Positions 38,277-54,514 of a DNA stretch of 64,000 nt are shown piece after piece. The notes below the pieces were generated by a model, which was not told the DNA's origin, did not search any database, and worked only from the letters and a program-made list of their open reading frames with translations. The stretch is taken from the IMG/VR virus record IMGVR_UViG_3300032287_003113, positions 155,880 through 219,879 of that record; one strand, 5' to 3'. Position numbers and translations under genes: made by a program. How positions within the stretch are numbered: the stretch's first letter is position 1; each line of letters opens with the position of its first letter.

Positions 38277-39137
38277 TTATTTGCCCCAGCCGTTGCCCCA
38301 AAGATCCACATGCAAACGTGGGCTGTAGTTAAATCCACGTTCACAACAGATATTGGCGATGTTTAGTTTGTTGCTTTCGTATGGGTCAACTACGCCACCT
38401 TGTGGCATTAGATATACCACACCTTTGAAACCGTCATGTCTAAATGCATCCACAGCACGTATGGCTTCTGTAACGTGATCTTCAGTTTCAACCACAAACT
38501 TGAGATAAGTGTGTCCGTAAGTTTGATAGATATTGACAATCTTGGGTTTGATAGCATCATCCCACGACTCGCCTGACGCACTTAGTTTGGCACTGACACT
38601 GAATGTGACTTCACGTCCGGCTTTGTCACTGGCCCAGTCAATCAAGTAATCGCGGAAGTCTTCGTGTAGTTCTTGAGTACCGTTGGTTTCAAATGTGATA
38701 TTCTTCAAGTCTGCCATGCGGTGATGACTCAACAGTTCTGCATAAGCACGTTGCCAACCTAGCAAAGGTTCACCGCCTGTAATAACCAAGTGAACATCAT
38801 TGCCATTGTTTTGCATCCACATGTTATTAGGTGTCAGCGCCAACATCTTTTCCACAAGTTCTTCTGTGGTCAGTGTGGGACTCAGGTGTTTGTAGGCTGG
38901 ATGCCACGATGCATAACTGTCACATCCTGTTTCTACCAATGGAAGATCGTTGAATGTTTTGTACAGTTCTACCTTTTTGGCCACGTCATCTGCACCTGTT
39001 GATTTTTCGCCAGGCTTGCAACCAAAACCTGAACAGGTAAAGTTACATCCGTATGTTCTTAAGAATACGCTAGGTACTCCAACAAAGCGACCTTCGCCTT
39101 GTAAGCTATAAAATATTTCGCTGACTTTAATCTTCAT
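38277..39137 (-). CDS. queE: 7-carboxy-7-deazaguanine synthase (QueE-type radical SAM)
   Basis: SEIFYSLQGEG...VFLRTYGCNFTC, third Cys after a 36-aa insert (GCDS), VITGGEP, FETNGT, SPRLH; clustered with queD/folE. Confidence 0.85.
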   Translation of the reverse strand: MKIKVSEIFYSLQGEGRFVGVPSVFLRTYGCNFTCSGFGCKPGEKSTGADDVAKKVELYKTFNDLPLVETGCDSYASWHPAYKHLSPTLTTEELVEKMLALTPNNMWMQNNGNDVHLVITGGEPLLGWQRAYAELLSHHRMADLKNITFETNGTQELHEDFRDYLIDWASDKAGREVTFSVSAKLSASGESWDDAIKPKIVNIYQTYGHTYLKFVVETEDHVTEAIRAVDAFRHDGFKGVVYLMPQGGVVDPYESNKLNIANICCERGFNYSPRLHVDLWGNGWGK

Positions 39138-39402
39138 ATATTGTTGACCATTGTGTTAATTTTTGACTCTTTCTCACTTGTGCCGCATGTAATTCTGCTT
39201 CTGTAAAAATATTGTGTGCCTTGAGTAATTCTACTAACAATGTAACATCGCCTAGTTCTTGTACCAAATGTTCACGCTGGGTACCACCATCCTTGTAGCT
39301 ATTGTCAATACCAAAACGGCGAATCTTGCTGATAGCAACAATAACTTCAGCACACTCCTCTTGCAGTATGTCTAAGATTTCGTTAACCTTCGTAGATTGC
39401 AC
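39127..39402 (-). CDS. MazG-like nucleotide pyrophosphohydrolase
   Basis: LQEECAEVI...ELGDV; GTG start 39402 with GGAG SD. Confidence 0.7.
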   Translation of the reverse strand: MQSTKVNEILDILQEECAEVIVAISKIRRFGIDNSYKDGGTQREHLVQELGDVTLLVELLKAHNIFTEAELHAAQVRKSQKLTQWSTIYED

Positions 39403-39832
39403 TATTGGCTCCGTGTTCGGCACACTCAACTCTAACACAATAACAACGATTATTAGTTTTTTCTCGAATCAATTGATCTGCAAAATTAAAAGCGTGTTCA
39501 GCAAACTTTTCTGCACCTACTCCATCAAACATTCGGATCTCTACTAGGTCTAATGCTTGTAATTCTTCGAACTTGGCCAAGTGTGGATCTTGTCGATCCA
39601 GGGCCAACTTGTGATCAAAGTGATCTTCTAGCCAGGCTTTTAGTTCTTTAAGTCCTCCAAAGTCCACTGCCCAGTTCTTGTTGTCTAATTGGTCACAACC
39701 AAATGTAAATGTGAACGCTAGGCTGTAACCATGTAGCAGATGACAGTGACTGTGATCAGCATTGGGCTGTCTAAATACAGCACTCAATCCAATGTTGTGT
39801 CCGTAATGTTTTGTTGAGTAATACTTTGCCAT
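39383..39832 (-). CDS. queD: 6-carboxy-5,6,7,8-tetrahydropterin synthase
   Basis: HCHLLHGY, DFGGLK, FDH, terminal E; next to queE. Confidence 0.85.
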   Translation of the reverse strand: MAKYYSTKHYGHNIGLSAVFRQPNADHSHCHLLHGYSLAFTFTFGCDQLDNKNWAVDFGGLKELKAWLEDHFDHKLALDRQDPHLAKFEELQALDLVEIRMFDGVGAEKFAEHAFNFADQLIREKTNNRCYCVRVECAEHGANSAIYEG

Positions 39833-39840
39833 TGATTTCT

Positions 39841-39901
39841 CCTATGTTAATTATAGCATAGGCGGCAGAATTTATCAAGCGGGAATGACGCCAAGACCGC
39901 T
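39841..39901 (-). ncRNA. Candidate riboswitch (preQ1-I-like H-type pseudoknot plus SD-sequestering hairpin) in the queD leader
   Basis: P1 AGCGG/CCGCU, loop UCUUGGCGUCAUUC, tail UGAUAAAUUCUGCCGCC, hairpin CCUAUG/CAUAGG over AGGAG. Confidence 0.45.
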
Positions 39902-39917
39902 GTTTTGGGGATATAAC

Positions 39918-39923
39918 TATTTA
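39918..39923 (-). promoter_or_regulatory. Late-type promoter motif TAAATA for the queD leader
   Basis: ATAAATA overlapping the upstream stop, 86 nt before the queD ATG. Confidence 0.5.
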
Positions 39924-40466
39924 TCTCCACCATTCTTCCCAAGGAAAAACACACCATATGGGTTCTTCCAGTTTGTTTATTGACATGCCTGTATAGTCTA
40001 CATCTTTAAAGTCACTGGCCTCGTTGTTGATCAACACAGCAAAACGAACATTGTTGCCCCATACTGTCTTCCAACGCTCGTGGTCTGGCAAGCAACCGCT
40101 TGTCCAATCTTCGCGAATCCAATTTAGGGTAGCACCTGTGTCATTGATATCATCCACAACCAGAATGTTTTTGGCGTTGATACTGTAATCAAAGTCGGCT
40201 AACAACCGTTCTTCTTTGGGCACATATCCAAATGCTTCTTCGGCCATCCACAAGTTGCTTTCTGGTCCATGATCACTGTCACGTAAACTTACTTTCAGCG
40301 TTTCCATTGGAACTTCTAAATAATGACTCAGCATGGCAGCTGGTACTAGGCCGCCACGAGTAAGTCCCACAATGTAGTCAGGCTTCCATCCATCTGCATT
40401 CATGGCACGAATGATATCGTGTACCCAAGCTCGAACTGTTGAATCTTTGTAATATACTTTGTTCAT
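39921..40466 (-). CDS. Type I phosphoribosyltransferase (xanthine/guanine PRT-like)
   Basis: IVGLTRGGLVPA, ILVVDDINDTGAT PRPP loop, FPWE. Confidence 0.85.
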   Translation of the reverse strand: MNKVYYKDSTVRAWVHDIIRAMNADGWKPDYIVGLTRGGLVPAAMLSHYLEVPMETLKVSLRDSDHGPESNLWMAEEAFGYVPKEERLLADFDYSINAKNILVVDDINDTGATLNWIREDWTSGCLPDHERWKTVWGNNVRFAVLINNEASDFKDVDYTGMSINKLEEPIWCVFPWEEWWR

Positions 40467-40467
40467 T

Positions 40468-40638
40468 TTATCTTCTCGTGTTAATTCTTATACATTCGGC
40501 TAATTCTCGATCTGAATGCGATTTTGTAATACAGTTTCTAGCAGTGGCATCAGCCAGCGGATCGTGAGTTTGATAATATACTGCCATGGCAAGTATGATA
40601 GCAAGTAGAATTGCAATAACGATGTCTCTCAATTTCAT
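40468..40638 (-). CDS. Small membrane-anchored protein MKLRDIVIAILL...INTRR (56 aa; not in ORF track)
   Basis: AAGGA SD, N-terminal transmembrane segment, fills the gap. Confidence 0.6.
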   Translation of the reverse strand: MKLRDIVIAILLAIILAMAVYYQTHDPLADATARNCITKSHSDRELAECIRINTRR

Positions 40639-40648
40639 TTGAATATCC

Positions 40649-40876
40649 TTATTTTTCTAAATTACGTATACGCAAGCTAAGATCACGACCATCTGTGACC
40701 TGTCGATTTTCAAGTTGTGTTACCTTGCGTTGCAATCTAGAAATTCTAATGTGTGCATATACCAGCACAGCAACCACAAGAGTAAATGTCAGTCCCCAAC
40801 CGGCAACAATGCCGATCATCCAAGACCATAGGTCGGATATTTCTGTTACAACAGCCTGTAGACTTTGTGTAATCAT
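40649..40876 (-). CDS. Small membrane protein with coiled-coil tail
   Basis: Hydrophobic segment followed by heptad-like C-terminus. Confidence 0.6.
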   Translation of the reverse strand: MITQSLQAVVTEISDLWSWMIGIVAGWGLTFTLVVAVLVYAHIRISRLQRKVTQLENRQVTDGRDLSLRIRNLEK

Positions 40877-41298
40877 GCAAATGCTTCCTCTTCTAAATAG
40901 CGTTTTAATTCTTTGTCTGTGGGTTCTACTGTGTAATTGTTCTTGAAGAAGATTTCGTAGCTGTCCGAACCGTATTTTCCAATGCCATACAGTTTGTCAG
41001 CTTCATTGCCATCCCATTCCATGAAATCCAGACTCATCTGCACCAGTCGTTCATAACGACGATTCACCATGCCCAGACTCCAGATCACATCACGCACCTC
41101 GTCCGGAGTGGCCTGCAAGAATGCATAAGCACTACGCCATTTATTCCAAAATACAGGAGCCACGGTCTTTACGGGTTTACGGCCAGTTTGGTTCAACATT
41201 ATGACCGCAACCATGTGTTGCCAGGCCGCATCGACACCCTCCAAGCCATCGGGCAACTGCTGTTGCACCATGAGATCATCGCGGAGTGGCTGTATCAT
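40873..41298 (-). CDS. HhH-GPD DNA glycosylase, MBD4 catalytic-domain-like
   Basis: WQHMVAVIMLNQT, LGMVNRR, LYGIGKYGSDSYEIF. Confidence 0.7.
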   Translation of the reverse strand: MIQPLRDDLMVQQQLPDGLEGVDAAWQHMVAVIMLNQTGRKPVKTVAPVFWNKWRSAYAFLQATPDEVRDVIWSLGMVNRRYERLVQMSLDFMEWDGNEADKLYGIGKYGSDSYEIFFKNNYTVEPTDKELKRYLEEEAFA

Positions 41299-42131
41299 CT
41301 TGGTGCAAACTCTTGTTGCAGTTTGATATTGTCCATGAACTCTTTCTTGGTGCCAGGATCATCTTTGAACGCACCTTTCAGCACCGTGGTCTGAGTCAAA
41401 CTTGAATGTGCCATGATACCACGATTCTCACAGCAACCATGTGTGGCCTGTATGTACACACCAATATTTTCGCTGTCGGTAGCACGACTTATTTCTCTCG
41501 CGATGTCGTTGCATAGTTCTTCTTGTAGAGTACCGCGACGAGCACACCACTGAGCAATCCTAGTGTACTTAGATAAGCCAATAAGTTTTTGGGCAGCAAT
41601 GATACCAATGTAAGCAACGCCAGATACAGGCTGATGATGGTGACTGCACATACTACGCAATTCGCTACGCACAACAAGCATGCCTTCATATCTATCCTCG
41701 CTATCGTTAGGGAAAGCAGTGGCATCAGGTCTGGGTTCATACCTACCTGCCATGATTTCATTAAAATACATCTTGGCCAAGCGTCGTGCTGTGCCACGAC
41801 TGTTGGGATCTGTCGCACGATCAATCAACAGGGTGTCTAAAACTCGTTCAAAAGCTTCTGTAGCTTCATCGATTAGTCGTTCTTTGTCGCCTTCGTGCAA
41901 GTAATCGCTGATGTTGTCACCGGCCCAGAAACGTTTCTTGTTACGCTTCATGTTGAACCGAATAGCATCGGCTAGATACTTGCCTTCTTCGTAACCTTTA
42001 TCGCTCATGTGCATTACAGCATCTTCGTATCCGGGATGATACGGTGCTTCATTTACGTATTGTGTAGCTTTGATTGCATCAAATAGTAGATCTTTATCTT
42101 TATTTTTATCTTTATTTTTATTTTTGGACAT
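41295..42131 (-). CDS. folE: GTP cyclohydrolase I
   Basis: TARRLAKMY, SMCSHHHQP, GLSKYTR, RGTLQEEL, ATHGCCENRG. Confidence 0.95.
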   Translation of the reverse strand: MSKNKNKDKNKDKDLLFDAIKATQYVNEAPYHPGYEDAVMHMSDKGYEEGKYLADAIRFNMKRNKKRFWAGDNISDYLHEGDKERLIDEATEAFERVLDTLLIDRATDPNSRGTARRLAKMYFNEIMAGRYEPRPDATAFPNDSEDRYEGMLVVRSELRSMCSHHHQPVSGVAYIGIIAAQKLIGLSKYTRIAQWCARRGTLQEELCNDIAREISRATDSENIGVYIQATHGCCENRGIMAHSSLTQTTVLKGAFKDDPGTKKEFMDNIKLQQEFAPR

Positions 42132-42177
42132 GTATTCTCCGAGTTAGTGTCGTGGATGACTTTGTATTATTGTATGA

Positions 42178-42183
42178 TATTTA
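42178..42183 (-). promoter_or_regulatory. Late-type promoter motif TAAATA
   Basis: Overlaps the upstream stop, about 47 nt before the folE ATG. Confidence 0.45.
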
Positions 42184-42762
42184 GATTGCAAAGTCAATGG
42201 TTCTCAAGTCTGAATATTGGATATATTTAGGTTTTTCGTCCACTAATGGTAATTTTTGTGATCCCAGTTCGCATACTTCTAACGTGGGACAATAGTGATA
42301 TCCTTGTTCAAATACTTTTTGTTCGGTCCAGGGCAATATGGATAAATCTCTACCATCACTACGCATACGACTCAGTGTTTGGTAATCTTGTTTGTTGTCT
42401 AACAAGATAGCACCTGCTCTACCTAACTGTAAGGGTTTGCCGTTACCGAAACTTAAACATTGTTTATGGCCTGCACGGTACATTGCTCGTTCAAGTCTGC
42501 GAGCACTATCCCAGATATTGGTATGCCCAAATTGATATTCGCCTTGCCACGCCTGGTCTTTTAATTCGTAATGTATACCCAATTGACGAATCATTTGCGG
42601 AACACTAAGATAGGTATATGCTGTAAACTCTGTGTAAGTGACTCGGTCTAACCTAAAACACAATTCCATTGCGTGTGTGCAACTGTCGGTGACAACCACA
42701 TAAGGGGCACCGGTATACTCTGCCAGTGCGTGTTCAAAGTCAAACAGTCTTTTAAAACTCAT
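42181..42762 (-). CDS. Short DegT-like PLP-dependent aminotransferase
   Basis: FEHALAEYTG..VTDSCTHAM, WDSA, CLSFGNGKPL.LG.AGAIL; only 193 aa. Confidence 0.65.
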   Translation of the reverse strand: MSFKRLFDFEHALAEYTGAPYVVVTDSCTHAMELCFRLDRVTYTEFTAYTYLSVPQMIRQLGIHYELKDQAWQGEYQFGHTNIWDSARRLERAMYRAGHKQCLSFGNGKPLQLGRAGAILLDNKQDYQTLSRMRSDGRDLSILPWTEQKVFEQGYHYCPTLEVCELGSQKLPLVDEKPKYIQYSDLRTIDFAI

Positions 42763-42790
42763 ATATTCAAATTGCCTTTAGTGGAACACT

Positions 42791-42819
42791 ATTATAATAT
42801 AAATACCATATCAAATCAA
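42791..42819 (-). promoter_or_regulatory. Sigma70 promoter, leftward half of a divergent pair
   Basis: TTGATT-17-TATAAT. Confidence 0.6.
42798..42805 (+). promoter_or_regulatory. T4-type late promoter TATAAATA, rightward half of a divergent pair
   Basis: Exact TATAAATA 30 nt before ATG 42835. Confidence 0.6.
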
Positions 42820-42834
42820 ATTTAATTTAATCAA

Positions 42835-43920
42835 ATGAAACGTGCTGTTATCTGTGTTGCCAATCCTTGGGAATATATACCGCTATACGATAAAAATTAT
42901 AGCATTATGGTATTGAATCCCTCGGCACCTGCTGATCGAAATCAATACTTGTTGAACAATTCAGACTGGAGCCTATTGGTCACGGCCGACAATGTACAAG
43001 AAAGAGACGGCGCCGACTATCCCGGAGAAAAAGTTTATTGGTATACATCGGGCACCACCGGCGACAGTAAATTTTACAGTTTTACCGAACAACAAGTCGA
43101 TTATGTGTGTCGTCAAATAATCAAATCCTACGATCTTACTGCCAATGATCGATATGTTGGTGTAATGAGTCTATGGCATGCACACGGACAAATGATGTAT
43201 TGGATGAGCCGCATGATCGGCATGGAAACAACATTTTTGCCCATTGGACGATTGCAAGAAGTTTCCAAACACAGTCCCACATTCATCACCGGTATTCCAG
43301 ACATATTAAAAGCCTTGATGAAGCAACAGTTTGATAGTTTACGATTTGTTCGTAGTGCCAGTTCTGCTTTGCCTCCACAACTGTATTCTGCTATGAAAGA
43401 ACGTTTTGCTGTACCTATCGTGGAAAGTTTTGGTATGACAGAATCGTGTAGTCACTGTCTGACCAATCCCTTGGAAGGTGAACAACGCATAGGCACAGTG
43501 GGTTTACCGGATGGAGTAGAAGCACGTATTGAGCAAAATAAACTACTGATTAGAGGGCCGGCTGTGGCCGATTCGGATTGGCTCGACACCGGCGATTTGG
43601 CCGAGCAAGATGAAGCAGGGTACTTTCGAATTCTAGGACGTAGTGTGGATCGTATCAATGTGCGTGGTTACAAATTGGATCCCTTGAGCCTGGAAAACAA
43701 ACTATATGCGGCCTTTCCTGACCTTAAAGATCTAGCAATATTTGGTACCGACTCTGTAAAATGCATATACAATGGACCGTACGATAAAACGCAAATCAAG
43801 GCAGTATTGGTATCTATGGGACAATCGTGTTATCCAACCATACTTGAAGAAGTTGATTCAGTACCTAAAAATGCCGCGGGCAAGGTGTCAAGGACCATGC
43901 TCAATGACCTATTCGCTTAG
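42835..43920 (+). CDS. AMP-forming acyl-CoA synthetase / adenylation (ANL) enzyme
   Basis: YTSGTTGDSK, ESFGMTE, GTVG, TGDL, GRSVDRINVRGYK, PKNAAGK. Confidence 0.85.
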   Translation: MKRAVICVANPWEYIPLYDKNYSIMVLNPSAPADRNQYLLNNSDWSLLVTADNVQERDGADYPGEKVYWYTSGTTGDSKFYSFTEQQVDYVCRQIIKSYDLTANDRYVGVMSLWHAHGQMMYWMSRMIGMETTFLPIGRLQEVSKHSPTFITGIPDILKALMKQQFDSLRFVRSASSALPPQLYSAMKERFAVPIVESFGMTESCSHCLTNPLEGEQRIGTVGLPDGVEARIEQNKLLIRGPAVADSDWLDTGDLAEQDEAGYFRILGRSVDRINVRGYKLDPLSLENKLYAAFPDLKDLAIFGTDSVKCIYNGPYDKTQIKAVLVSMGQSCYPTILEEVDSVPKNAAGKVSRTMLNDLFA

Positions 43921-44271
43921 GTGATCTTTTTTAATCTCACGTACTGCACACTCTAGTCGTTCAGCAATAGCGTTTTTAATGGCAATACGTTTGTTGTTGT
44001 GATCTCTAATGGCAATGGCACGTCGACCAATTTCTTCTAGCCCTAGTTCTTGTTCACGCCCAGTTTTAAGCAAGGACTCTAGTTCCCATATCTCGTTGTG
44101 TATGCCCACAAGATTCATATATAAATCTTCAATTTTTTCTATGTCGTGTGCTATCGCTTGATTCATGTACCAAGTGAGTTCTTCAGCATTGGCTCCTCCG
44201 GTGCGTTTAAACTTAACGTCGGCGATGGCCAGGCGATCAAATAATTCAATAACAGGAAATGTAGGAGTCAT
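43909..44271 (-). CDS. Hypothetical helical protein
   Basis: ATGA-coupled to the upstream radical SAM gene. Confidence 0.65.
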   Translation of the reverse strand: MTPTFPVIELFDRLAIADVKFKRTGGANAEELTWYMNQAIAHDIEKIEDLYMNLVGIHNEIWELESLLKTGREQELGLEEIGRRAIAIRDHNNKRIAIKNAIAERLECAVREIKKDHLSE

Positions 44272-45296
44272 AGGTATAAGGTCTCTATTTTTTTGGGGTT
44301 ATCTAAAATGTTTTGTATCTGTATATTGCTTATGTTAGGACGACATGGAGCACAAAACTCCACACGAGTTCGATTGTATATTTCGTAATGACGAGCATTC
44401 AACCAACTATCACGGAAGTCTCCTGAGTCCCAATTGGCCAATTCAAACTGTGGATTACCCTTGCCTTCACAACAGATGTATATTTTACCATCGGCACAGA
44501 ATACAGGAAAGTGGAACATCTGGTGACACTTCTTGTAGTTACGTGGCAGAGTTTTGTTTTGATTGGCCCAGTATGGTAACCTGTACAACTGACTGTACTT
44601 TTCTAGTCTAGCAATGGTCTCTGGGGTAATTGGGTATGCTTGATTGTCAATGATAACAGGACGGAAGTAAATCATACGACCACCCAACTTGGCTACCAAG
44701 CGAAACAGATCATTCATTGCTTCTTCGGTGTCGTTCAATGGGTTTATCAATGCTTTAAAGTCAACATTGACCCCGGCTTGGATCAGGCCACGAGCATTGT
44801 CACATACCTTGGTAAACAAACTACGAGCAGTTAGGCTACGACGTATTTCTTCATACAAACTTTCTGTGCCGGCATCAATGTCAATACCAATCCAGGCCAT
44901 CTTGCGTAGTTTATCCACGTGAACAGTATCCAGCAGGGTGTCCAGGTTACTGCCGTTTGTGGTCAAACTGGTCAGGAATCCAAGGTCCAAGGTATGTTCA
45001 ATGACCTTCTCGTAACTGACCAATACAGTGGGTTCTCCACCGCCGGGATAGGTAATAGTATGAGTTGTGCCGTAACTGCGGGGAGTGTGTGCTCGCCACG
45101 TGGCCAACTTGTCTAGTAATGCAATGTATTCTGTGTATTTCTTTTGTACAGGCTTTTCTGCACGGAAGTCGGCAGAATTGCAGTAGTAACAGTCTTGATT
45201 ACACACATTGGTCAGATCTATGTCTACCTGAGCAGGCAAGATCTTCATGGTGTCTTGATTTCTCATCCAATGGACAAGTTCTGCGTATTGATACAT
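44268..45296 (-). CDS. Radical SAM protein with C-terminal SPASM/twitch
   Basis: CNQDCYYC, GGGEP, TTNG; C-terminal KCH...ICCE...CAPC. Confidence 0.85.
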   Translation of the reverse strand: MYQYAELVHWMRNQDTMKILPAQVDIDLTNVCNQDCYYCNSADFRAEKPVQKKYTEYIALLDKLATWRAHTPRSYGTTHTITYPGGGEPTVLVSYEKVIEHTLDLGFLTSLTTNGSNLDTLLDTVHVDKLRKMAWIGIDIDAGTESLYEEIRRSLTARSLFTKVCDNARGLIQAGVNVDFKALINPLNDTEEAMNDLFRLVAKLGGRMIYFRPVIIDNQAYPITPETIARLEKYSQLYRLPYWANQNKTLPRNYKKCHQMFHFPVFCADGKIYICCEGKGNPQFELANWDSGDFRDSWLNARHYEIYNRTRVEFCAPCRPNISNIQIQNILDNPKKIETLYL

Positions 45297-45322
45297 TATG
45301 GGCCCGGGGAATTAGATCCAAG

Positions 45323-46691: not shown

Positions 46692-46831
46692 TCTTTTCTT
46701 GCCTTGTGTTTAGCTAAAGCATCTGCACTACGCTGTTGGAAATCTACCATTGAGTGATACCCCATTTGATAGCAAGGACAATGGTTGCCTAAAATCTTAC
46801 GGGCCAACCAGATTCTAAATTTTTTGGTCAT
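46688..46831 (-). CDS. Small protein MTKKFRIWLARKILGNHCPC... (47 aa; not in ORF track)
   Basis: TGA overlaps the next ATG; fills the gap. Confidence 0.55.
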   Translation of the reverse strand: MTKKFRIWLARKILGNHCPCYQMGYHSMVDFQQRSADALAKHKARKE

Positions 46832-46991
46832 GGATAAGATCTCCTGTTACGGCATTGACCTTCATACCGGATTCGTTAATATAATAAGGTTGGCACATTT
46901 TAGTGCCATCCCATCGTTGTCCGCACCAGCACTCACCTTCTGCATTAATGATGCAATTGCCTGAACCGCAACAGCGTGGATCAGTCATCAT
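46815..46991 (-). CDS. Small Cys-rich protein
   Basis: RCCGSGNC...CWC...MC; GGAG SD before ATG 46991. Confidence 0.55.
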   Translation of the reverse strand: MMTDPRCCGSGNCIINAEGECWCGQRWDGTKMCQPYYINESGMKVNAVTGDLIHDQKI

Positions 46992-47658
46992 TACGCCCTC
47001 CAAACAACTGCAACAGGCTGATAAAAATATTGATAAAGTTTAGGTATAGGCTAAGTGCTCCTAACACTTCTTCGCGACCAGTATCACTATCATGTGACAC
47101 TATTTGGCGAATATTTTGTGTGTCGTATGCAGTTAGTCCCAAAAACACAACAATAGCAATAGCACTGATGACCATTTGCAACACTGAGCTGCCAACAAAG
47201 ATATTGACAATGCTGGCAATCACAATGGCAATCAAGCCCACAAACATGAATGATCCTATACTGGTCAAATCTTTTTTGGTAAAGTAACCATAAATGCTCA
47301 TGGTGCCAAACAGCACAGCGCCACCCATAAAGGCTGTAAAGATACTGCCCATGGAATAGATCACAAAGATTGTGGCAAAGCTCAGGCCCATAAGAGCACT
47401 GAACGCATACAAGAATAATTGTAGTCCAGTCTTGCTAAATCTTTCAGACGCAAATGTCATTGCTAAAATGCACACCAACGGAGCAAAAATAACAATCCAT
47501 TTTGTTAAACCTGTAAAAAAGAATCGCACCAGCTCTGGACTGGATCCTACAAAATAGCTCACAAACATACTGATAATCACAGCAAGACTCATGTGACCAT
47601 ACACACGACCCATTGCTTCATTAATTCCTGCGGCACTACGGTATACTGCTGTATTCAT
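46981..47658 (-). CDS. Bax inhibitor-1 / YccA family membrane protein
   Basis: 7 hydrophobic segments; YGYFTKKDL, GLTAYDTQNI, ALSLYLNFINIF. Confidence 0.85.
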   Translation of the reverse strand: MNTAVYRSAAGINEAMGRVYGHMSLAVIISMFVSYFVGSSPELVRFFFTGLTKWIVIFAPLVCILAMTFASERFSKTGLQLFLYAFSALMGLSFATIFVIYSMGSIFTAFMGGAVLFGTMSIYGYFTKKDLTSIGSFMFVGLIAIVIASIVNIFVGSSVLQMVISAIAIVVFLGLTAYDTQNIRQIVSHDSDTGREEVLGALSLYLNFINIFISLLQLFGGRNDD

Positions 47659-47671
47659 ACGTTCTCCTCGA

Positions 47672-48232
47672 TTATTCTTCTACAAAATCAATCATATTAC
47701 CATCTGCATCGGCACAGATAATACGAGTATTGCCTTCATCGTCTGATACTTCCAATGGTCCCCAGACCCAAACCTCAGTTTCGTCCAAATACCACTTGTC
47801 ATCATCTTCTAATGAGTAAGCACCTTCTTCGCTGATGAATTCTTCTAAGCGTTCCGCTTCGTCCTCATCGTCGATACCTTCGATTTCAATATCGCCCCAA
47901 CAGCCGCCGTCAAACATTTCAACAAGTTCAGTTGATTCAATGTTGTCACCAAAGCAGGAGTTTAAGTCAACGCTGTCTAAATCAGCACTACCTCCTGGGC
48001 AGTTGGTAAAGCTAAATTGCGGAAACTCTCCGTCATTGGTTTCTACACGGTATTCACACGAGCGGAATCCGTCCTTGACAACAACGCGACCAGCGCCATC
48101 GTTTTGCACATAGTATTCGTGTTGTTCACAAGACTTTTTATAGTAGGTCCTAACAGTCCACCAGCGTGATTTGGATTCTGTGGCTGGTTCTGCTACTGCT
48201 ACATCTTCGTCGGGTCCATAGGGCCAAGCCAT
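47672..48232 (-). CDS. Hypothetical acidic protein
   Basis: 186 aa, very D/E-rich. Confidence 0.7.
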   Translation of the reverse strand: MAWPYGPDEDVAVAEPATESKSRWWTVRTYYKKSCEQHEYYVQNDGAGRVVVKDGFRSCEYRVETNDGEFPQFSFTNCPGGSADLDSVDLNSCFGDNIESTELVEMFDGGCWGDIEIEGIDDEDEAERLEEFISEEGAYSLEDDDKWYLDETEVWVWGPLEVSDDEGNTRIICADADGNMIDFVEE

Positions 48233-49425: not shown

Positions 49426-49426
49426 T

Positions 49427-50605
49427 TTAGTATTTGCTTTCATGAGTGTGTTTACGATAATCAGTGCTCATACGGCGCCACTGCTCTCCTTTACCTTCTA
49501 AAATATCTACAATGCGATCAATACAACCGTCGGTCCAATCACTAATACGTCCTTGGTTAGGATGGGGATCAGCCAACAAATTGACCAGTTTGGTTTCGGC
49601 ATCATCTAACGACCAAGGAATGTAAAGTCGTTCAGGATCGTTAGCAAAAGTTTCAGGGAAACTACGATAAGCAGGATAAAGCACGTTGGCTCCCAGAGTG
49701 TCTGCTTCTGAAACGGTGTTTGATACCCAGTCTTGCAGAGCACAATTAAACAACACACGAGTATCGTTAAGTAGATGATAGTAATCATTTTTTTCCAAAT
49801 CCTCATATACTGTTAGCCAACCGCGAGCCTGTAGGTCTCTAGTACGAGCCATGTAGCTGTCATTGTTTGACTTTAGTTTAGCACCACTGAAAATAGCAAA
49901 CTCCACTGGAAAGTTGTTGTGATTACGATGCCATTGTTCAATTAAATCCATAAAGAAGTCTGGTTGCTTTTCCTGATCCCAACGTGCTGCAAATCCCACG
50001 CGATATGCACGATCCTGGAATGGTTTTAGTTCGCCCTCGATGCGACCACGCACTTCCGATTTGCCAAATGCCAAGCCCGAAATGTTATAGATGTTGCCTT
50101 CCCAACCGGCCACCTTCATGTGCATGACCATTTCTTCATTTGATGCTAGAATAATGTCCGCAAAACTATCCACCATTTTTTCATAAAGCCCCATCCACTT
50201 CTGCATACCCCACACATGAACGAAATCATCAGGGTCAATACTTTGTGCAAGGCAACGAACGGCAATGCGAGGACGATGAGCAGGATCGATTTGATCCATA
50301 ATATAAGGTAAGCTCTCGATACCGGGTTGAAACATGTCTTCAAAATAGATAACATCTTCATTTGTAACTTCTCCCTGTTTCATCTTGCGTACAAGATTCA
50401 TTAGTTGGCTCATACCAAAGTAAGTACGGCCATGTGCATCTAGCACTTGTCCTGTGACAATGGCTTGATCATTGCTGAGTGTTTCACCTGTAACAAGTTC
50501 GTACGTGATGCCACGACGTTTAAACACAGATTCATTCCAGTCTTGTAACTGTAATGTGTATCTTGCTTTGTAGGGCTCTAGGCCCATGTACCATAGTTTA
50601 CGCAT
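49427..50605 (-). CDS. GT-B (GT4-like) glycosyltransferase
   Basis: FAARWDQEKQPDFF, YYHLL..RVLFNCALQDWVSNTVSEA..G..VLYP..RSFPE; start ATG 50605. Confidence 0.7.
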   Translation of the reverse strand: MRKLWYMGLEPYKARYTLQLQDWNESVFKRRGITYELVTGETLSNDQAIVTGQVLDAHGRTYFGMSQLMNLVRKMKQGEVTNEDVIYFEDMFQPGIESLPYIMDQIDPAHRPRIAVRCLAQSIDPDDFVHVWGMQKWMGLYEKMVDSFADIILASNEEMVMHMKVAGWEGNIYNISGLAFGKSEVRGRIEGELKPFQDRAYRVGFAARWDQEKQPDFFMDLIEQWHRNHNNFPVEFAIFSGAKLKSNNDSYMARTRDLQARGWLTVYEDLEKNDYYHLLNDTRVLFNCALQDWVSNTVSEADTLGANVLYPAYRSFPETFANDPERLYIPWSLDDAETKLVNLLADPHPNQGRISDWTDGCIDRIVDILEGKGEQWRRMSTDYRKHTHESKY

Positions 50606-50619
50606 CTTATAAAGCCTCA

Positions 50620-50880
50620 TTAGTCTCTGGGTTTCCAATTCGTATCACGTGGTTTAAACGTGGTACGATCACGCTTGGGAGTACGCCACTGGTCCCATGG
50701 TTCACGCCCACGTACCATTTTCATGTATTCACCGTAGGGTGTGCGTTCGTTGTAAAGATTTTTCTCATCAAACGGATAACCATAGTCTCGACAAAAACGC
50801 TCATAGCGTTCTAGGTCTTCAAAGATAGCGACCACTTCGGGTTTGAAACGAAGATACTTCTTTAGCCATTCTTGGGCCAT
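50620..50880 (-). CDS. Hypothetical protein
   Basis: AGGAG SD. Confidence 0.7.
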   Translation of the reverse strand: MAQEWLKKYLRFKPEVVAIFEDLERYERFCRDYGYPFDEKNLYNERTPYGEYMKMVRGREPWDQWRTPKRDRTTFKPRDTNWKPRD

Positions 50881-50891
50881 GTTACTACTCC

Positions 50892-51341
50892 TTAGATTAC
50901 AATTGATTGGGAAGGGCGAGTGAGGTTATAATGAATCAAGCAACCGTTCTCGCCATCTTCGGCCACTTGAATTGAAATATTACGATTGGGATATCGATCT
51001 GCAATCTGTATGTAAAGATCGTCAGCGATCATTTCACACGATTTGAAATCCAGTTCTAAAACGGTATTCTGACCGTTATACAGCGACTCGAGCCATCGTT
51101 TGAACTGGATGAACTCGATGTCCCGGTCATTGTGGAACACATCGATTGACACCCGGAAATGAAATATATGGCGATGAGGATTAGCAAGGAACGCGACATC
51201 ATACTCTCCTGCTGTATTTAGCCGGGGATCAGTGGCCGCCGCTGGGTAGCAATGGATACCTTCTTTGCGGAAGGTGACCCAGATTCTGCGCCGGGCAGCT
51301 GTTTTAACTCTTTCAATTACTGCTCTTTGTTCTTGATTCAT
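50892..51341 (-). CDS. QueD paralog, DpdL-like (putative 7-carboxy-7-deazaguanine decarboxylase)
   Basis: LANPHRHIF matches the LxxxHRHxF signature recalled for DpdL; also DRDIEFI, SCEM, V.EDGENG. Confidence 0.6.
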   Translation of the reverse strand: MNQEQRAVIERVKTAARRRIWVTFRKEGIHCYPAAATDPRLNTAGEYDVAFLANPHRHIFHFRVSIDVFHNDRDIEFIQFKRWLESLYNGQNTVLELDFKSCEMIADDLYIQIADRYPNRNISIQVAEDGENGCLIHYNLTRPSQSIVI

Positions 51342-51342
51342 T

Positions 51343-52443
51343 TTATGCCTTGAGCATGTTAATAAGATTAGGGAAAGTTTTTGTAAAATCTAAATTTCTG
51401 CGTTTATCTATTGTGTTTAACGAGTATACAACATTGTCTATATTTTTGTCAAATGGTTTGGTAAGAAATTCTGCACAATTATGTAAACTGTTGCCAAATG
51501 TTGTGTTTGGATTATATCTATTTAGATCGCTGATTAAATCACCTAAAATTTTATCACCAAAATTTCTAGCGTCCAAATATTTTGGTTGTGTCAAGTAATG
51601 TACTGCTGTGCGATCAATATCTACGCCCAAATCAATAAGATATTCCCCAGTTTCAACAATGTTGGTAGAGAGCAAGAAATAATTCATTGTTACACCAATT
51701 TTCTCCTGGGGCCATTGTTGAATCAATTGTCGAAGGTTCGTTTCAAACTCCGACCATACTCCTGGATGCCTGATATACTCAAATTGAGCACCTGTGGCTT
51801 CAACACTGATTTCCCATTGCACATTGTTAAACTGTTTTATTTTAGAATAAATTCCAGTTTTTAAATTTGAAAGATTAGTGGTGATGCGTACCAAGCAATC
51901 AGGATTGGCCGCATATAATCGATCCAACAGTTCGCCATTTTCTTTAATCATCAACGGTTCGCCGCCGGCCAAGTATACTTCTTGAAGCCCCGCCAGTTTA
52001 TCGTGTGTGTAATCTTTCAATTGATCAAATGTGGAACGATCGGCATTGACAGTTTGTCCCATTTCAGCCGCCCACAAACTGCTAAAGTATGGACCACAAT
52101 AAACACAGGCATAGTTACAGACGTTTGACCAGCGTAGATCCAGTTGTGTCAGTTTATGCGTACCATCGTAATCAATGTCAACGTCCTTGTGTAATTTGAG
52201 CTGGTATGCTCGATTACTAAACTCAGGATCTACAGTTTCTCTTTGCTCGCATAGCTGACAGCTTTTGGGCCAGTGACCTGATTTTAAACTGTTTCTTATT
52301 TGTTGATTTTGTGTGTTGTCTAATATTACAGCAATTGGTGAAGATTTTAAGTTGCCCAGGGTTTCTTGGCTCATGGCACAATTTCTAACAGAACCATCGG
52401 GATTAACAGCGACGCCAGTCCACGGAAGCGGACAAGCGATCAT
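51343..52443 (-). CDS. Radical SAM protein with N-terminal twitch-like domain
   Basis: CPLPW..NC..CQLC; core CNYACVYC-GPYFSSLW; AGGEP; start ATG 52443 (ATGA). Confidence 0.85.
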   Translation of the reverse strand: MIACPLPWTGVAVNPDGSVRNCAMSQETLGNLKSSPIAVILDNTQNQQIRNSLKSGHWPKSCQLCEQRETVDPEFSNRAYQLKLHKDVDIDYDGTHKLTQLDLRWSNVCNYACVYCGPYFSSLWAAEMGQTVNADRSTFDQLKDYTHDKLAGLQEVYLAGGEPLMIKENGELLDRLYAANPDCLVRITTNLSNLKTGIYSKIKQFNNVQWEISVEATGAQFEYIRHPGVWSEFETNLRQLIQQWPQEKIGVTMNYFLLSTNIVETGEYLIDLGVDIDRTAVHYLTQPKYLDARNFGDKILGDLISDLNRYNPNTTFGNSLHNCAEFLTKPFDKNIDNVVYSLNTIDKRRNLDFTKTFPNLINMLKA

Positions 52444-52955
52444 TTTATAACTTCGTCTTGTGTGTATTTGGACCAATCCGTAAACTTAGTACGATCCTTT
52501 AAGTCATGTAACTGGTGACACCATACTCCGGGATTGGTTGCTGCAAAGTCTTTGTCATCCAGCTTTATTGTGGCGTTGTATCCCAAAAGTTGCAGATATG
52601 GTAGTTTAACACTGATCATTGGGATGAAATTGTTGTACTCGATCAAACAGCCCTGGGCTAGACCTTCTGCACTAGACACATCCAAATCCAAAGTACACAA
52701 TAGACCTCGTTGTAAACATGAGGTGATCATGCCTTCCCATTCACGCCAAGTATCGCCATCGTCGACGTCAGGATTGGGAAAACTTTGGTTGGCACCAAAA
52801 TAAACATGGTTGCAATTATTGTCCATGACCATATTGATAATAACGCCGGCGTCTTGTACACCAACCACAAATAAAGTTTTATGTCCAAATGCCGGGCTAT
52901 GCTCTACTTCCCGGCCAACAAAGAAATTTACTTGTTCGTGTCCTGCTCTGTTCAT
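52440..52955 (-). CDS. Uncharacterised protein adjacent to the DpdA-like gene
   Basis: G.EVE...G.KTLFVVG, HVYFGAN, NPGVWC; ATGA-coupled to the transglycosylase. Confidence 0.7.
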   Translation of the reverse strand: MNRAGHEQVNFFVGREVEHSPAFGHKTLFVVGVQDAGVIINMVMDNNCNHVYFGANQSFPNPDVDDGDTWREWEGMITSCLQRGLLCTLDLDVSSAEGLAQGCLIEYNNFIPMISVKLPYLQLLGYNATIKLDDKDFAATNPGVWCHQLHDLKDRTKFTDWSKYTQDEVIK

Positions 52956-54514
52956 TCTGCCTCCAGTGCGTCTAGTTTAGTTTGATCAAATTCTTGTTCT
53001 GTTGTTTCTTCTACAATTTCTACATCATCTTCAAAATAAAACAATTTACTAAAATTGGCACTACCGTTAACAGCTTTCTTGCCTTTGAATCCTCTAGTAC
53101 CAACAATTTCACACCAATACCCGGTATCTCCTTTATACATATCAATGATCTCCATCGATGTTGCTTTATCTGGGGCAGCAAAGATTGCTTCTACGATGTC
53201 TTCAAAATATTCACCACCCGGGCCTGAGCTACGCATCATGGCAGGATGAGCACCGGCATCAAATCTACGATTGGCTTCTTGTACCGCTGTCAAATGCATC
53301 CATACATTATGACCCATTAACAATGCGTAACTAAAACTATCCCATGACGTTTTGCCTTCTTTGCCATTCTTGTTTACATCGCCTGGTTTGTAGTAGCAAA
53401 TGTCTTTCATTTTAAACAAGTTACTAAGTGGACTGTCTTCCCAACGTGGATACTTGCCATCCGCTACCACTCCGTCACTCCACTTGCGTGTGTCTGTTGC
53501 GTACTTTTTGTCATCTGCACTAGGAGCCATCCTGTATGACCACTTGCCGTTGTCGGGAAACACATTTTCAAAGTATACCTGTCCGTTGGCAGTTGCCAAG
53601 AATGGACTAGCACAATCAAAGCTGATAGTGAAACTAGGATTTACATATTTTCTAACGTTTCGTTGTATTACAGTTAACAGTACTGCCCACTCTAGTTTGC
53701 TTGTGCCCAAGAAGTGCATCCAATCGTGAACACCTTCTTGTAACAAGTTATCATGACGTAGAGTAACTAAACGTCTGAGAATCAACTCTACGTCACACAT
53801 GTTTTGTCCACCCATGGCCCATCCGTTAAAGTGTGTGTCTGGATGTTGCACAGGATCACAATAGTGTTTCATGGTTTCGTACCAATCGTCGGCCTCAATG
53901 TGGTTGGCACCTTGTAATACATTTAAGATCTTAACACCACCGTTCTTGATACCTTTACGATTGGTCATAAAGTAATCATTGTTGTATTTGGTAGCATCAA
54001 CAGCTTCCTGGTGCGTACTGATACCACATTTCTTACCTGCTTCTTTATCTAGTGCAACCCAGGTTGGAATATCAAGGGTCATACCGTAGTCAGCAATGCC
54101 ATCAAGCCAAGCCAAAACCTGTTCTCGTTTTTTCTGTGCTTTGGGACATCCTGAATTGGCCTTCCAATCGCCTTCCCATAATCCTTTGGCAATCTGGAAT
54201 CCACCAGAGTCGCCTAAGATCAGTGTGTTGGGATCACGATTGCGTACCATATCCTCTGACCAGTCCTGTTTGGCAAGGTCGAGGTTTGCGTGGCCACCGG
54301 AGTAAAGAGACCACTTGTAAGGAAACAACGCTTTTTGATCATTCAACCAGTTGAGTTGTTCCATGTCTGTTATGCCTTGCGGAAAACGTGTAGGATCCAC
54401 ATAAGGTCCGGCAGGATCACGTTGCTTGCCTATGAACGTGGCATAGAAACCACTGATGGCTGGAAGGAACACAGCATAGTCTGATTGTTTGGCAGTTAAG
54501 TTATCTTGGCTCAT
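52952..54514 (-). CDS. dpdA: TGT-fold guanine transglycosylase, DpdA-like
   Basis: LGDSGGFQ, TLDIP, LNVLQG, GWAMGG, MHFLG, ISFDCASP, C-terminal HN; no CxCxxC Zn site; linked to folE/queD/queE; start ATG 54514. Confidence 0.7.
   Translation of the reverse strand: MSQDNLTAKQSDYAVFLPAISGFYATFIGKQRDPAGPYVDPTRFPQGITDMEQLNWLNDQKALFPYKWSLYSGGHANLDLAKQDWSEDMVRNRDPNTLILGDSGGFQIAKGLWEGDWKANSGCPKAQKKREQVLAWLDGIADYGMTLDIPTWVALDKEAGKKCGISTHQEAVDATKYNNDYFMTNRKGIKNGGVKILNVLQGANHIEADDWYETMKHYCDPVQHPDTHFNGWAMGGQNMCDVELILRRLVTLRHDNLLQEGVHDWMHFLGTSKLEWAVLLTVIQRNVRKYVNPSFTISFDCASPFLATANGQVYFENVFPDNGKWSYRMAPSADDKKYATDTRKWSDGVVADGKYPRWEDSPLSNLFKMKDICYYKPGDVNKNGKEGKTSWDSFSYALLMGHNVWMHLTAVQEANRRFDAGAHPAMMRSSGPGGEYFEDIVEAIFAAPDKATSMEIIDMYKGDTGYWCEIVGTRGFKGKKAVNGSANFSKLFYFEDDVEIVEETTEQEFDQTKLDALEAE

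Follow-up and report, generated by a model that had tools for sequence, protein, structure and literature searches.

A large uncultured phage, known from the IMG/VR record IMGVR_UViG_3300032287_003113, carries a set of genes whose inferred role is to replace guanine in its DNA by a 7-deazaguanine made without the usual preQ0 step. The base exchange would be performed by a very divergent enzyme, and the locus also encodes a sugar transferase that, among cultured phages, was found only in phages with the same pathway, which suggests that the base may be sugar-decorated. The module lies on the minus strand at positions 38277-54514 of the 64,000-nucleotide stretch that we analysed (hereafter the window), which corresponds to positions 155,880 to 219,879 of the record. 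An earlier note, based on the sequence of the window alone, had pointed to folE, queD, queE, a DpdA-like gene with a tRNA-guanine transglycosylase (TGT) fold and a QueD paralog, spread over 16 kb among many extra enzymes, and what it described proved to be real, as all five genes are present, intact and on the minus strand. The features of the locus are the following:

38277-39137, minus strand: queE, 7-carboxy-7-deazaguanine (CDG) synthase of the radical SAM type
39127-39438, minus strand: MazG-like nucleoside triphosphate pyrophosphohydrolase
39383-39832, minus strand: queD, 6-carboxytetrahydropterin synthase (CxxxHGY variant)
39921-40466, minus strand: purine (xanthine/hypoxanthine-guanine-like) phosphoribosyltransferase (PRTase)
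41295-42131, minus strand: folE, GTP cyclohydrolase I, with an N-terminal extension of about 80 aa
42181-42762, minus strand: half-size DegT/DnrJ-like (sugar aminotransferase-like) protein, conserved at about 200 aa
45323-46318, minus strand: galE, UDP-glucose 4-epimerase
49427-50605, minus strand: GT-B / GT4-like glycosyltransferase linked to DpdL
50620-50880, minus strand: conserved 86-aa protein of unknown function (o86)
50892-51341, minus strand: DpdL-type QueD paralog, proposed CDG decarboxylase
51343-52476, minus strand: Twitch/SPASM radical SAM protein, a variable insertion and not part of the core
52440-52955, minus strand: conserved 171-aa protein of unknown function (o171)
52952-54514, minus strand: long-form DpdA-like guanine transglycosylase (predicted TGT fold), 520 aa

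The genes for the first steps of the pathway are readily recognised. QueE matches phrog_2076 (E 2e-54), whereas the NCBIfam QueE models match only its N-terminus, below cut-off, and its Cys triad C31/C35/C72 is conserved, with the insert typical of phage QueE, and aligns with the CX3CX2C of the QueE of Acidovorax phage ACP17. QueD matches Pfam PTPS (1.5e-14) and phrog_2389 (1.4e-39), is 46% identical to the QueD of Cellulophaga phage phiST and shares the CxxxHGY motif of the phiST and ACP17 proteins. FolE matches Pfam GTP_cyclohydroI (1e-38) on residues 93-269 and is 59% identical to the FolE of Phosso. The MazG-like protein is supported by Pfam MazG (6e-5, just above cut-off) and phrog_4856 (2e-19), and a MazG also sits in the phiST cluster. 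The PRTase matches Pfam Pribosyltran (3e-13) and, below cut-off, the NCBIfam xanthine PRTase (4e-10), and PRTases also lie in the deazaguanine clusters of BUCT-ZZ01, Ps15 and PA5oct.

The QueD paralog carries the sequence LANPHRHIF, which fits the motif LxxxHRHxF. The earlier note had assigned this motif to DpdL, and correctly so, since the CxxxHGH of QueD is reported to become LxxxHRHxF in DpdL (Hutinet et al. 2023, PMC10516641). The protein also matches phrog_17812 (2e-34) and is 66% identical to the Phosso protein, 52% to the DpdL of ACP17 and 33% to that of phiST.

The 520-aa protein is the most divergent member of the set. Its longest open reading frame starts at a TTG at 54565, but homologues start at the ATG at 54514. 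It matches no Pfam, NCBIfam or PHROG model, PF01702 and PF23859 find nothing in the genome, and it fails every curated TGT and DpdA HMM, so that DNA rather than tRNA as its substrate is inferred only from context. However, its confident AlphaFold model (pLDDT 90.2) matches tRNA-guanine transglycosylases with a Foldseek E of 6e-8 and a Z of 19.6 over about 305 residues, and the motifs DSGGFQ, LD, QG, HxLG and SxD are invariant in 69 diverse homologues. Moreover, an hhalign comparison of its profile with that of the phage DpdA2 enzymes gave 98.1% probability (E 8e-14) across the catalytic core, from DSGGxQ to ISxDS. The DpdA2 profile includes the enzyme of Vibrio phage VH7D, which experimentally inserts preQ1, preQ0 and a little CDG into DNA (PMC10516641). 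The VH7D enzyme is 458 aa long, works with QueC, QueF and DpdM in the preQ1 branch and is found by ordinary BLAST among DpdA2 members, whereas the protein of the window is not. The latter is not DpdA3, the subfamily that accompanies DpdL in phiST: the phiST DpdA3 has 259 aa and is not detectably similar by BLASTP, and hhalign gives only 69.7% probability over 85 columns. Instead, it belongs to a large unnamed long-form clade of at least 900 clusters at 50% identity, a point that goes beyond what the note had predicted.

The fold and motifs are those of tRNA-guanine transglycosylases, and the genome encodes 11 tRNAs, including tRNA-Asp(GUC), a queuosine-family tRNA, so that an enzyme acting on phage or host tRNA to tune translation could be considered. 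We regard this possibility as very unlikely. The closest profile relatives are phage DpdA2 enzymes, DpdL is known only from DNA-modifying phages (PMC10516641), the gene lies among replication genes and the family lies next to DNA polymerase genes, the DNA of phage PA5oct has modified G (PMC12191111), and tRNA enzymes use preQ1 or preQ0, which this pathway cannot make without QueC and QueF. Independent context comes from Vibrio phage 2.275.O, where the homologue lies beside QueF, a YhhQ-like transporter, a “queuosine biosynthesis protein” with an adjacent nucleophile aminohydrolase (both are record annotations, which we read as QueC-like and Gat-like), and FolE.

The absence of QueC, which the note could see only within the window, extends further. 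No queC or queF was found in the window or in the whole 219,879-bp record, although this record is only about 51% complete. QueC is also absent from a contig whose DpdA is 97-99% identical (288.8 kb, 80% complete), from two relatives that are 92-95% complete, and from the complete genomes of PA5oct and ACP17, whereas QueF is absent from the record itself and the three metagenomic relatives. The only weak PP-loop hit is NadE. The pathway would therefore bypass preQ0, and the reading offered by the note, a modification pathway that stops at CDG or 7-deazaguanine (DG) or leads to a further-decorated form, is supported. An alternative is that the host supplies preQ0 or preQ1, which most bacteria make, that the enzyme inserts it and that DpdL has another role, with the absence of QueC being irrelevant, and indeed the same DpdA clade works with a QueF-containing pathway in phage 2.275.O. 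This also seems very unlikely, since it would be odd to encode FolE, QueD and QueE but to omit only QueC in every member of the lineage, and DpdL without QueC is the published signature of the dDG branch (PMC10516641).

The second point beyond the prediction relates to the sugar genes. A comparison of 84 loci revealed a conserved order of DpdA, o171, DpdL, o86, glycosyltransferase, GalE, DegT-like protein, FolE and QueD in about 80 related contigs. The DpdA-like gene is the most conserved member (81 of 84 loci), and o171, next to it, occurs in 79 of 84, with a homologue directly upstream of ACP17 DpdA (E 4e-16; HMM 1e-18). The o171 model (pLDDT 71) gave no significant PDB fold match, and a shape TM of 0.58 to QueE models is a lead only. 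The o86 protein occurs in 70 of 84 loci between the glycosyltransferase and DpdL, without any family hit. GalE (TIGR01179, 289.6 bits, above the equivalog cut-off of 262.3) occurs in 54 of 84 loci, next to the glycosyltransferase, whereas the DegT-like protein, which matches Pfam DegT (1e-10) on residues 8-63 only and shows weak NCBIfam matches to sugar transaminases, occurs in 47 of 84, always between GalE and FolE. In contrast, the Twitch/SPASM protein (NF033640, 9.5e-72, above cut-off) was found in only 13 of 84 loci and is absent at this position in L009, a contig whose DpdA is 97-99% identical. Most of the interleaved extra enzymes to which the note had drawn attention are, in fact, variable cargo and not part of the conserved module.

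The glycosyltransferase resembles GT4 clusters of the ESM Atlas (structural TM 0.69-0.75), and a profile search against PDB returned the GT4 enzyme WlaC (5e-5). Among 50,697 phage records, tblastn found it only in five DpdL records, and a profile search added three more DpdL phages. The profile search placed it in 6 DpdL lineages, and found it absent from 4 DpdA phages without DpdL and from phiST, the one phage group where plain dDG was measured. Homologues lie beside DpdL or DpdA in ACP17, PA5oct, Phosso, BUDD/X1, BCSR5 and BUCT-ZZ01 (63% identity), and the gene sits directly beside DpdL or DpdA in seven otherwise unrelated phage groups. It tracks DpdL and not the DpdA clade, as phage 2.275.O has the same DpdA clade but neither DpdL nor the glycosyltransferase. 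A sugar added to an already modified base has functional analogies in the T4-type glucosylation of hydroxymethylcytosine and in the tRNA queuosine mannosyltransferase (QTMAN), and the Atlas lists a QTMAN-like cluster among the look-alikes of the glycosyltransferase (score 0.97). This is a resemblance and not membership, since no homology to T4 glucosyltransferases was shown and QTMAN acts on a hydroxyl of queuosine in tRNA.

Among described systems, the dDG cluster of phiST (FolE-QueD-QueE-MazG-DpdL-DpdA3; PMC10516641) has FolE, QueD, QueE, a MazG and a DpdL with the same LxxxHRHxF motif, lacks QueC, and predicts a deazaguanine without the cyano or aminomethyl side chain. It is compact (about 4.5 kb, against 16 kb here), has a different transglycosylase, and has no glycosyltransferase, GalE, o171 or PRTase. 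The clusters of ACP17, Synechococcus phage BUCT-ZZ01, Xanthomonas phages BUDD/X1 and Burkholderia phage BCSR5 show the same set of DpdA, DpdL and a GT4-like glycosyltransferase adjacent to one another, with FolE, QueD and QueE nearby, but their DpdA is the 416-446-aa DpdA2 type, whereas the enzyme of the window is a deeper branch related only at profile level. The nearest cultured carrier of the long-form protein is the Pseudomonas jumbo phage PA5oct (Wroclawvirus), where EST35_0316 (36% identity), in the locus EST35_0314-0324, is followed by a GT-like gene, DpdL, an 86-aa ORF, an epimerase-like fragment, a PRTase and QueE. There is no full GalE and no o171 homologue was detected. All these genes except QueE are annotated as hypothetical, and the preprint, in the parts consulted, names no transglycosylase. 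However, PA5oct DNA resists restriction enzymes with G-containing sites and is hit by nucleases that sense modified G (PMC12191111).

Taken together, the analysis supports the gene identities, the homology of the 520-aa protein to DpdA2 at profile level and its modelled TGT fold, the lack of QueC in every genome checked and the conserved synteny, whereas the chemistry, the action of the enzyme on DNA and the roles of the remaining genes are inferred. In the explanation that we favour, FolE, QueD and QueE convert GTP to CDG, which follows from established pathway knowledge. DpdL would then decarboxylate CDG to 7-deazaguanine by analogy with phiST, an assignment that does not rest on biochemistry of any DpdL, and ACP17 DpdA plus DpdL gave no dDG in E. 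coli (PMC10516641). The 520-aa enzyme would exchange guanine for the deazapurine in phage DNA after replication. More speculatively, the PRTase could plausibly return the released guanine to the GTP pool and MazG may trim a nucleotide pool. We hold the core of this explanation, a preQ0-independent deazaguanine placed in DNA by the DpdA-like enzyme, with reasonable though not full confidence. G/C-containing palindromes are still under-represented in the genome (mean O/E 0.81-0.86, against about 1.0 for AT-only), which argues against a complete, fully protective replacement.

A pre-replicative route could also be proposed, where the PRTase turns the free deazapurine into a nucleotide, kinases and reductase make the dNTP, MazG removes dGTP and the phage polymerase incorporates the product, with the TGT-like protein in an auxiliary or repair-like role. 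A PRTase and a MazG do lie inside the cluster, PRTases recur in the deazaguanine clusters of other phages, and a nucleoside form of ADG was seen in CP220-infected cells, as cited in PMC10516641. However, every phage with deazaguanine DNA encodes a DpdA, which the field reads as post-replicative insertion (PMC10516641), the DpdA-like gene is the most conserved member of the module, and the PRTase is equally well explained as guanine salvage. PRTase and MazG were matched in only 2 and 0 of the 84 loci, respectively, but most of those loci do not extend far enough to reach these genes and the low counts are not informative. This route appears very unlikely.

A less remote alternative, although we consider it doubtful, is that the DNA carries plain dDG (or dCDG) exactly as in phiST, and that the glycosyltransferase, GalE and DegT-like genes are mere neighbours serving the glycosylation of virion proteins or host envelope sugars. 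In its favour, phiST makes dDG without any glycosyltransferase, seven DpdL phage lineages lack this gene, and 7-deazaguanine has no side-chain hydroxyl for O-glycosylation and thus no obvious acceptor for a sugar. Against it stand the restriction of the glycosyltransferase to DpdL-encoding phages in the tblastn search and the failure of ACP17 DpdA plus DpdL alone to give dDG. The conserved glycosyltransferase plus GalE make the further-decorated form at least as likely as plain dDG, although sugar decoration itself remains a tentative proposal, somewhat short of an even chance even if the core explanation holds. In this view, the GT4-type enzyme, supplied with UDP-hexose by the adjacent GalE, and the sugar perhaps modified by the DegT-like protein, would further decorate the base or its precursor. 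The locus is thus best explained as a phage module that replaces guanine in DNA with a 7-deazaguanine through a branch leaving the queuosine pathway at CDG, and its final product may be a glycosylated deazaguanine rather than plain dDG.

The 219,879-bp linear IMG/VR virus record whose last 64 kb form the window is rated by CheckV as about 51% complete, and everything in the finding lies on the minus strand between positions 38277 and 54565. The main features are the following:
38277-39137 (-), queE
39383-39832 (-), queD
41295-42131 (-), folE
49427-50605 (-), a 403-aa protein, putative GT4-like glycosyltransferase
50892-51341 (-), a DpdL-type QueD paralog
52952-54565 (-), a TGT-like ORF, most likely starting at the ATG at 54514, as its homologues do

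Family scans confirmed the three pathway genes for the synthesis of CDG, with matches of folE to Pfam GTP_cyclohydroI (1e-38), of queD to Pfam PTPS (1.5e-14, with the Cys-containing motif) and phrog_2389 (1.4e-39), and of queE to phrog_2076 (2e-54). None of the three reaches the NCBIfam equivalog cut-offs, as expected for divergent phage versions, and the NCBIfam QueE equivalogs match only the N-terminus of QueE. However, the three cluster cysteines of this protein align with those of other phage QueE proteins, across an insert shared by PA5oct, BUDD, BUCT-ZZ01 and others. FolE carries a Lys/Asn/Asp-rich N-terminal extension of about 80 aa, which lies outside the Pfam match and is not seen in canonical FolE. 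Just downstream of queE there are a TauE/SafE-type sulfite-exporter-like membrane protein (36610-37572, minus strand, 1.3e-12) and a weak DUF2452 protein (37569-38069, minus strand), which, together with a weakly galactose-3-O-sulfotransferase-like ORF at 54501-55139 (phrog_3347, 8e-4), offer a possible hint of sulfur or sulfate chemistry.

The QueD paralog contains the sequence L-A-N-P-H-R-H-I-F, aligned with the same motif in the DpdL proteins of phiST and ACP17. QueD's CxxxHGH has been reported to become LxxxHRHxF in DpdL, the proposed CDG decarboxylase (PMC10516641), and the motif put forward in the earlier note is therefore correct. In tblastn comparisons, the protein is 52% identical to ACP17 DpdL (E 6e-37) and 33% identical to phiST DpdL (E 4e-9). 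It aligns with them throughout and, in an alignment that includes QueD, shares with the latter one invariant His and two invariant Glu, although it has no Pfam PTPS hit of its own. Its genomic company of FolE, QueD, QueE and a DpdA-like protein, but without QueC, is also that expected for DpdL.

The TGT-like gene was the weakest part of the observation. The 520-aa protein has no Pfam, NCBIfam or PHROG hit, genome-wide searches with PF01702 (TGT) and PF23859 (DpdA) at E up to 1 and 10 found nothing, and neither phmmer nor two family HMMs gave any TGT hit among the PDB sequences. Only structure and profile-profile comparisons worked, and three independent lines nevertheless place the protein in the TGT/DpdA superfamily. 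First, an AlphaFold model built on 69 diverse homologues is confident (pLDDT 90.2, pTM 0.89), and its 50 best PDB matches are all tRNA-guanine transglycosylases (E 6e-8), and a second structural alignment gives Z 19.6 to 2ash over about 305 aligned residues spanning model residues 11-428. In the viral structure library BFVD, the model hits phage “queuine tRNA-ribosyltransferases”, including the DpdA2 of Vibrio phage nt-1 (1e-9) and, weakly, phiST DpdA3 (9e-3). Second, an hhalign comparison of the family profile with a DpdA2 alignment that includes VH7D gives 98.1% probability and E 8.3e-14 over 186 columns, across the stretch from DSGGxQ to ISxDS (94.7% probability against ACP17 alone). The VH7D enzyme inserts preQ1, preQ0 and a little CDG into DNA in E. 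coli (PMC10516641). Third, residues D102, S103, G105, H267 and D300 are invariant, and G104, Q107, L147, D148, G202, L269 and G270 are at least 90% conserved, among the 69 homologues of 26-86% identity. This motif pattern, with an Asp in DSGGFQ, an Asp in LD, QG, and an Asp in (F/S)xD, is that of the general acid/base, the substrate-binding and the nucleophilic Asp of TGT, which by analogy would be the counterparts of D102, D156 and D280 of the Z. mobilis enzyme.

A DpdA3 assignment, which the company of DpdL could suggest, was rejected, since BLASTP against phiST DpdA3 gave no significant match and hhalign against the phiST/MA9V-3 DpdA3 type reached only 4.3% probability with one alignment (A1) and 69.7% over 85 columns with the family alignment (A2). 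The family of this long-form protein is large and unnamed, with more than 7,000 clusters at 90% identity, none of them with a Pfam domain or an informative name, and 912 clusters at 50% identity with E no greater than 0.001, whereas no paper in the literature searched uses a name such as DpdA5. The neighbourhoods of distant family members, found on contigs that were too short, said little. In a 320-kb relative (92% complete), the DpdA-like gene (contig positions 9959-11692) contains one in-frame stop in the tblastn-matched region, which could be a sequencing error, a pseudogene or recoding.

Because the record is only half complete, the absence of QueC was also examined in relatives, among the at least 599 IMG/VR loci retrieved with the DpdA-like protein. 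A search with PF06508 (QueC) found nothing above threshold in the window's own record, in a 288.8-kb contig (L009) whose DpdA is 97-99% identical (80% complete), in contigs of 331.7 kb and 320.8 kb that are 95% and 92% complete, or in the complete genomes of PA5oct and ACP17, whereas the control genomes gave the expected signal. The single 14-bit hit, in the relative G002 (95% complete), is NAD synthase. QueF is absent from the own record and the three metagenomic relatives. The pathway therefore leaves the queuosine route at CDG in the whole lineage.

To delimit the conserved module, the proteins of the window were compared by tblastn with 84 related loci, which showed the order methyltransferase, 244-aa protein, (212-aa protein), DpdA-like, 171-aa protein, DpdL, 86-aa protein, 403-aa protein, epimerase, DegT-like protein of about 200 aa, FolE and QueD.

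Occurrence of the module genes among 84 related loci (lower counts further from DpdA partly reflect the length of the flanks)
DpdA-like: 81
171-aa protein (o171): 79
DpdL: 78
86-aa protein (o86): 70
403-aa protein (putative glycosyltransferase): 69
Epimerase: 54
DegT-like: 47
FolE: 45

The earlier note had described the pathway as interleaved with many extra enzymes, but most of these are variable cargo, found in only 2-13 loci. A twitch radical SAM protein between o171 and DpdL was rejected as a core partner, as it occurs in only 13 of 84 loci and is missing at that position in L009. The AMP-binding ligase, the viperin-like radical SAM, the 120-aa ORF, Bax1-I, and the 186-aa and first 403-aa ORFs are present in only 2-6 of the loci. 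Among these and other neighbouring genes are the following:
44268-45296 (-), a radical SAM protein whose best NCBIfam match is prokaryotic viperin (1.5e-14, far below cut-off)
43909-44271 (-), the 120-aa ORF next to it
42835-43920 (+), an adenylate-forming (AMP-binding) ligase on the opposite strand
46981-47658 (-), a full-length Bax1-I/BI-1-like membrane protein (Pfam 4.7e-54), unusual for a phage and present in only 2 of 84 loci
40873-41298 (-), a small (141-aa) HhH-GPD/endonuclease III-like protein between folE and the phosphoribosyltransferase (Pfam 9e-5, nth 1.7e-5, both below cut-off), found in 6 of 84 loci
55139-55873 (-), the 244-aa protein (o244; phrog_12062, unknown function), always just upstream of the DpdA-like gene
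55923-56873 (-), a conserved class I SAM methyltransferase (316 aa, 77 of 84 loci)

The first three lie between the DegT-like gene and GalE, and an adenylating enzyme could in principle activate the CDG carboxylate. Host nucleases that sense hypermodified bases use an inactivated EndoIII domain (PMC12191111), and a phage copy of an endonuclease III-like protein inside a base-modification cluster may deserve attention. Homologues of o244 are annotated as a virion structural protein in PA5oct (by mass spectrometry) and as a sliding clamp in Phosso, but a PDB sequence search gave no support for either, whereas the methyltransferase beside it could belong to the module.

Among the other conserved pieces, o171 has a clear homologue directly upstream of ACP17 DpdA. 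Its model is middling (pLDDT 71), with nothing below E 0.03 in a Foldseek search against PDB, its PDB profile hits to ‘Cake’ designer repeat proteins are summed-repeat artefacts, and an Atlas feature search gave only scores of 0.85. A shape search gave TM 0.58 to QueE models, which we regard as a lead only. The phosphoribosyltransferase resembles xanthine and hypoxanthine-guanine enzymes, below cut-off, and similar enzymes recur in the deazaguanine clusters of BUCT-ZZ01, Ps15 and PA5oct, so that recycling of the guanine released by base exchange is a plausible, though inferred, role.

The 403-aa protein has no Pfam hit, and its reading as a glycosyltransferase rests on its look-alikes and its family. 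Its Atlas look-alikes are GT4 glycosyltransferases, with structural TM 0.69-0.75 for its nearest cluster, and include a tRNA-queuosine mannosyltransferase-like cluster. Its homologues in ACP17 and PA5oct give only sub-threshold Glycos_transf_1 hits, and the family profile hits the GT4 enzyme WlaC in PDB at 5e-5. Homologues lie directly beside DpdL or DpdA in ACP17 (ASD50404, between DpdA and DpdL), PA5oct (EST35_0317, same position), Phosso (annotated as glycosyltransferase, next to DpdL), the Xanthomonas phages BUDD and X1, the Burkholderia phage BCSR5 and the cyanophage BUCT-ZZ01. In the latter (Synechococcus phage BUCT-ZZ01, positions 6656-7819 and 3665-5005), the DpdL-adjacent glycosyltransferase is 63% identical to that of the window, while the DpdL proteins are only 41% identical and the DpdA proteins belong to different clades, which suggests horizontal transfer of the glycosyltransferase. 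This phage also has a second GT1-like gene on the other side of DpdA.

A tblastn search of all 50,697 phage records with the putative glycosyltransferase returned only five records, all encoding DpdL. A profile search of 17 genomes found it in six DpdL lineages, which were in the model and match by construction, but neither in seven other DpdL lineages, including phiST, nor in four DpdA phages that lack DpdL (VH7D, pf16, Ps15 and 2.275.O). Vibrio phage 2.275.O carries the same long-form DpdA clade, beside genes annotated in its record as QueF, a vitamin uptake (YhhQ-like) transporter, a queuosine biosynthesis protein and a nucleophile aminohydrolase (which we read as QueC-like and Gat-like), and FolE. 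The glycosyltransferase therefore follows DpdL, not the DpdA clade. The adjacent epimerase is GalE by the NCBIfam equivalog cut-off (TIGR01179, 289.6 bits against 262.3, E 2.4e-86). A glycosyltransferase aimed at hydroxymethyl-pyrimidines was also considered and rejected, since the only thymidylate-synthase-family gene (20359-21264, minus strand; PF00303, 344 bits, full length) scores like a canonical ThyA and is absent from G002, which keeps the glycosyltransferase.

Altogether, the observation of folE, queD, queE, a TGT-fold DpdA-like gene and a DpdL-like QueD paralog made in the earlier note is confirmed, and its interpretation as a deazaguanine DNA-modification pathway that stops short of preQ0 is supported. 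What the analysis itself shows are the gene families, the predicted fold, profile homology and motifs of the long-form protein, the absence of QueC in the genomes examined and the conserved gene order, whereas the enzymatic steps are proposed from them. The conversion of GTP to CDG by FolE, QueD and QueE is established chemistry for these families. The decarboxylation of CDG to 7-deazaguanine by DpdL is the published proposal, but it remains unproven, as it has never been shown biochemically and heterologous tests failed (PMC10516641). The exchange of guanine in DNA, rather than in tRNA, by the long-form DpdA is inferred from its homology to DpdA2, from its replication-gene neighbourhood and deazaguanine synthesis neighbours, and from the restriction resistance of PA5oct DNA at G-containing sites, which indicates modified G (PMC12191111). 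A tRNA role cannot be dismissed on the ground of the tRNA content, since the genome has 11 tRNA genes (record positions 25671-44895, about 110-130 kb upstream of the window), including tRNA-Asp(GUC) and one with an odd two-base anticodon call. Moreover, palindromes with G/C remain under-represented in the whole record (mean O/E 0.81-0.86, with GCGC 0.49, CGCG 0.52, AAGCTT 0.30 and GTGCAC 0.46), whereas AT-only palindromes are not (about 1.0). These statistics are a weak proxy for modification, but, if anything, they argue against full protection, and they fit partial or sequence-specific modification better than full replacement.

As a last step of the proposed mechanism, a GT4 enzyme with GalE may add a sugar in this lineage. 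In the fuller form of this reading, which we consider somewhat less likely than not, DpdL does not end the pathway in this lineage and in the cultured phages PA5oct, ACP17, BUDD/X1, BCSR5, BUCT-ZZ01 and Phosso. In this view, 7-deazaguanine, or a DpdL product other than plain DG, would be glycosylated by a dedicated GT4-type enzyme using UDP-galactose or UDP-glucose from the adjacent GalE, possibly as an amino sugar made through the DegT-like protein. The main weakness of this reading is that 7-deazaguanine lacks a side-chain hydroxyl, which leaves the sugar without an identified acceptor. If correct, the result would be a sugar-bearing 7-deazaguanine in DNA, a class of purine hypermodification not yet described, which would be installed by a large, unmodelled long-form DpdA clade.

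7-Deazaguanine DNA modifications are already known as a way for phages to escape restriction, but the preQ0-independent dDG branch has been measured in only one small group, phiST and its two relatives, which have no glycosyltransferase. The system studied here differs from the known DpdA/DpdL ones in its unmodelled long-form DpdA clade and in a DpdL-linked glycosyltransferase/GalE module that has not been described in the papers that could be searched. The same branch is widespread in very large uncultured phages, and surveys that use Pfam TGT or DpdA as the signature will miss them, as the transglycosylase is so divergent that no curated model finds it. PA5oct, ACP17, BUDD/X1, BUCT-ZZ01 and Phosso are in culture, and PA5oct-like phages are both candidates for phage therapy and targets of nucleases that sense modified bases. 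The putative glycosyltransferase that travels with DpdL may explain why ACP17 DpdA plus DpdL alone gave no dDG in E. coli, where the authors noted that other enzymes might be needed (PMC10516641), and it also points to a possible sugar-decorated purine.
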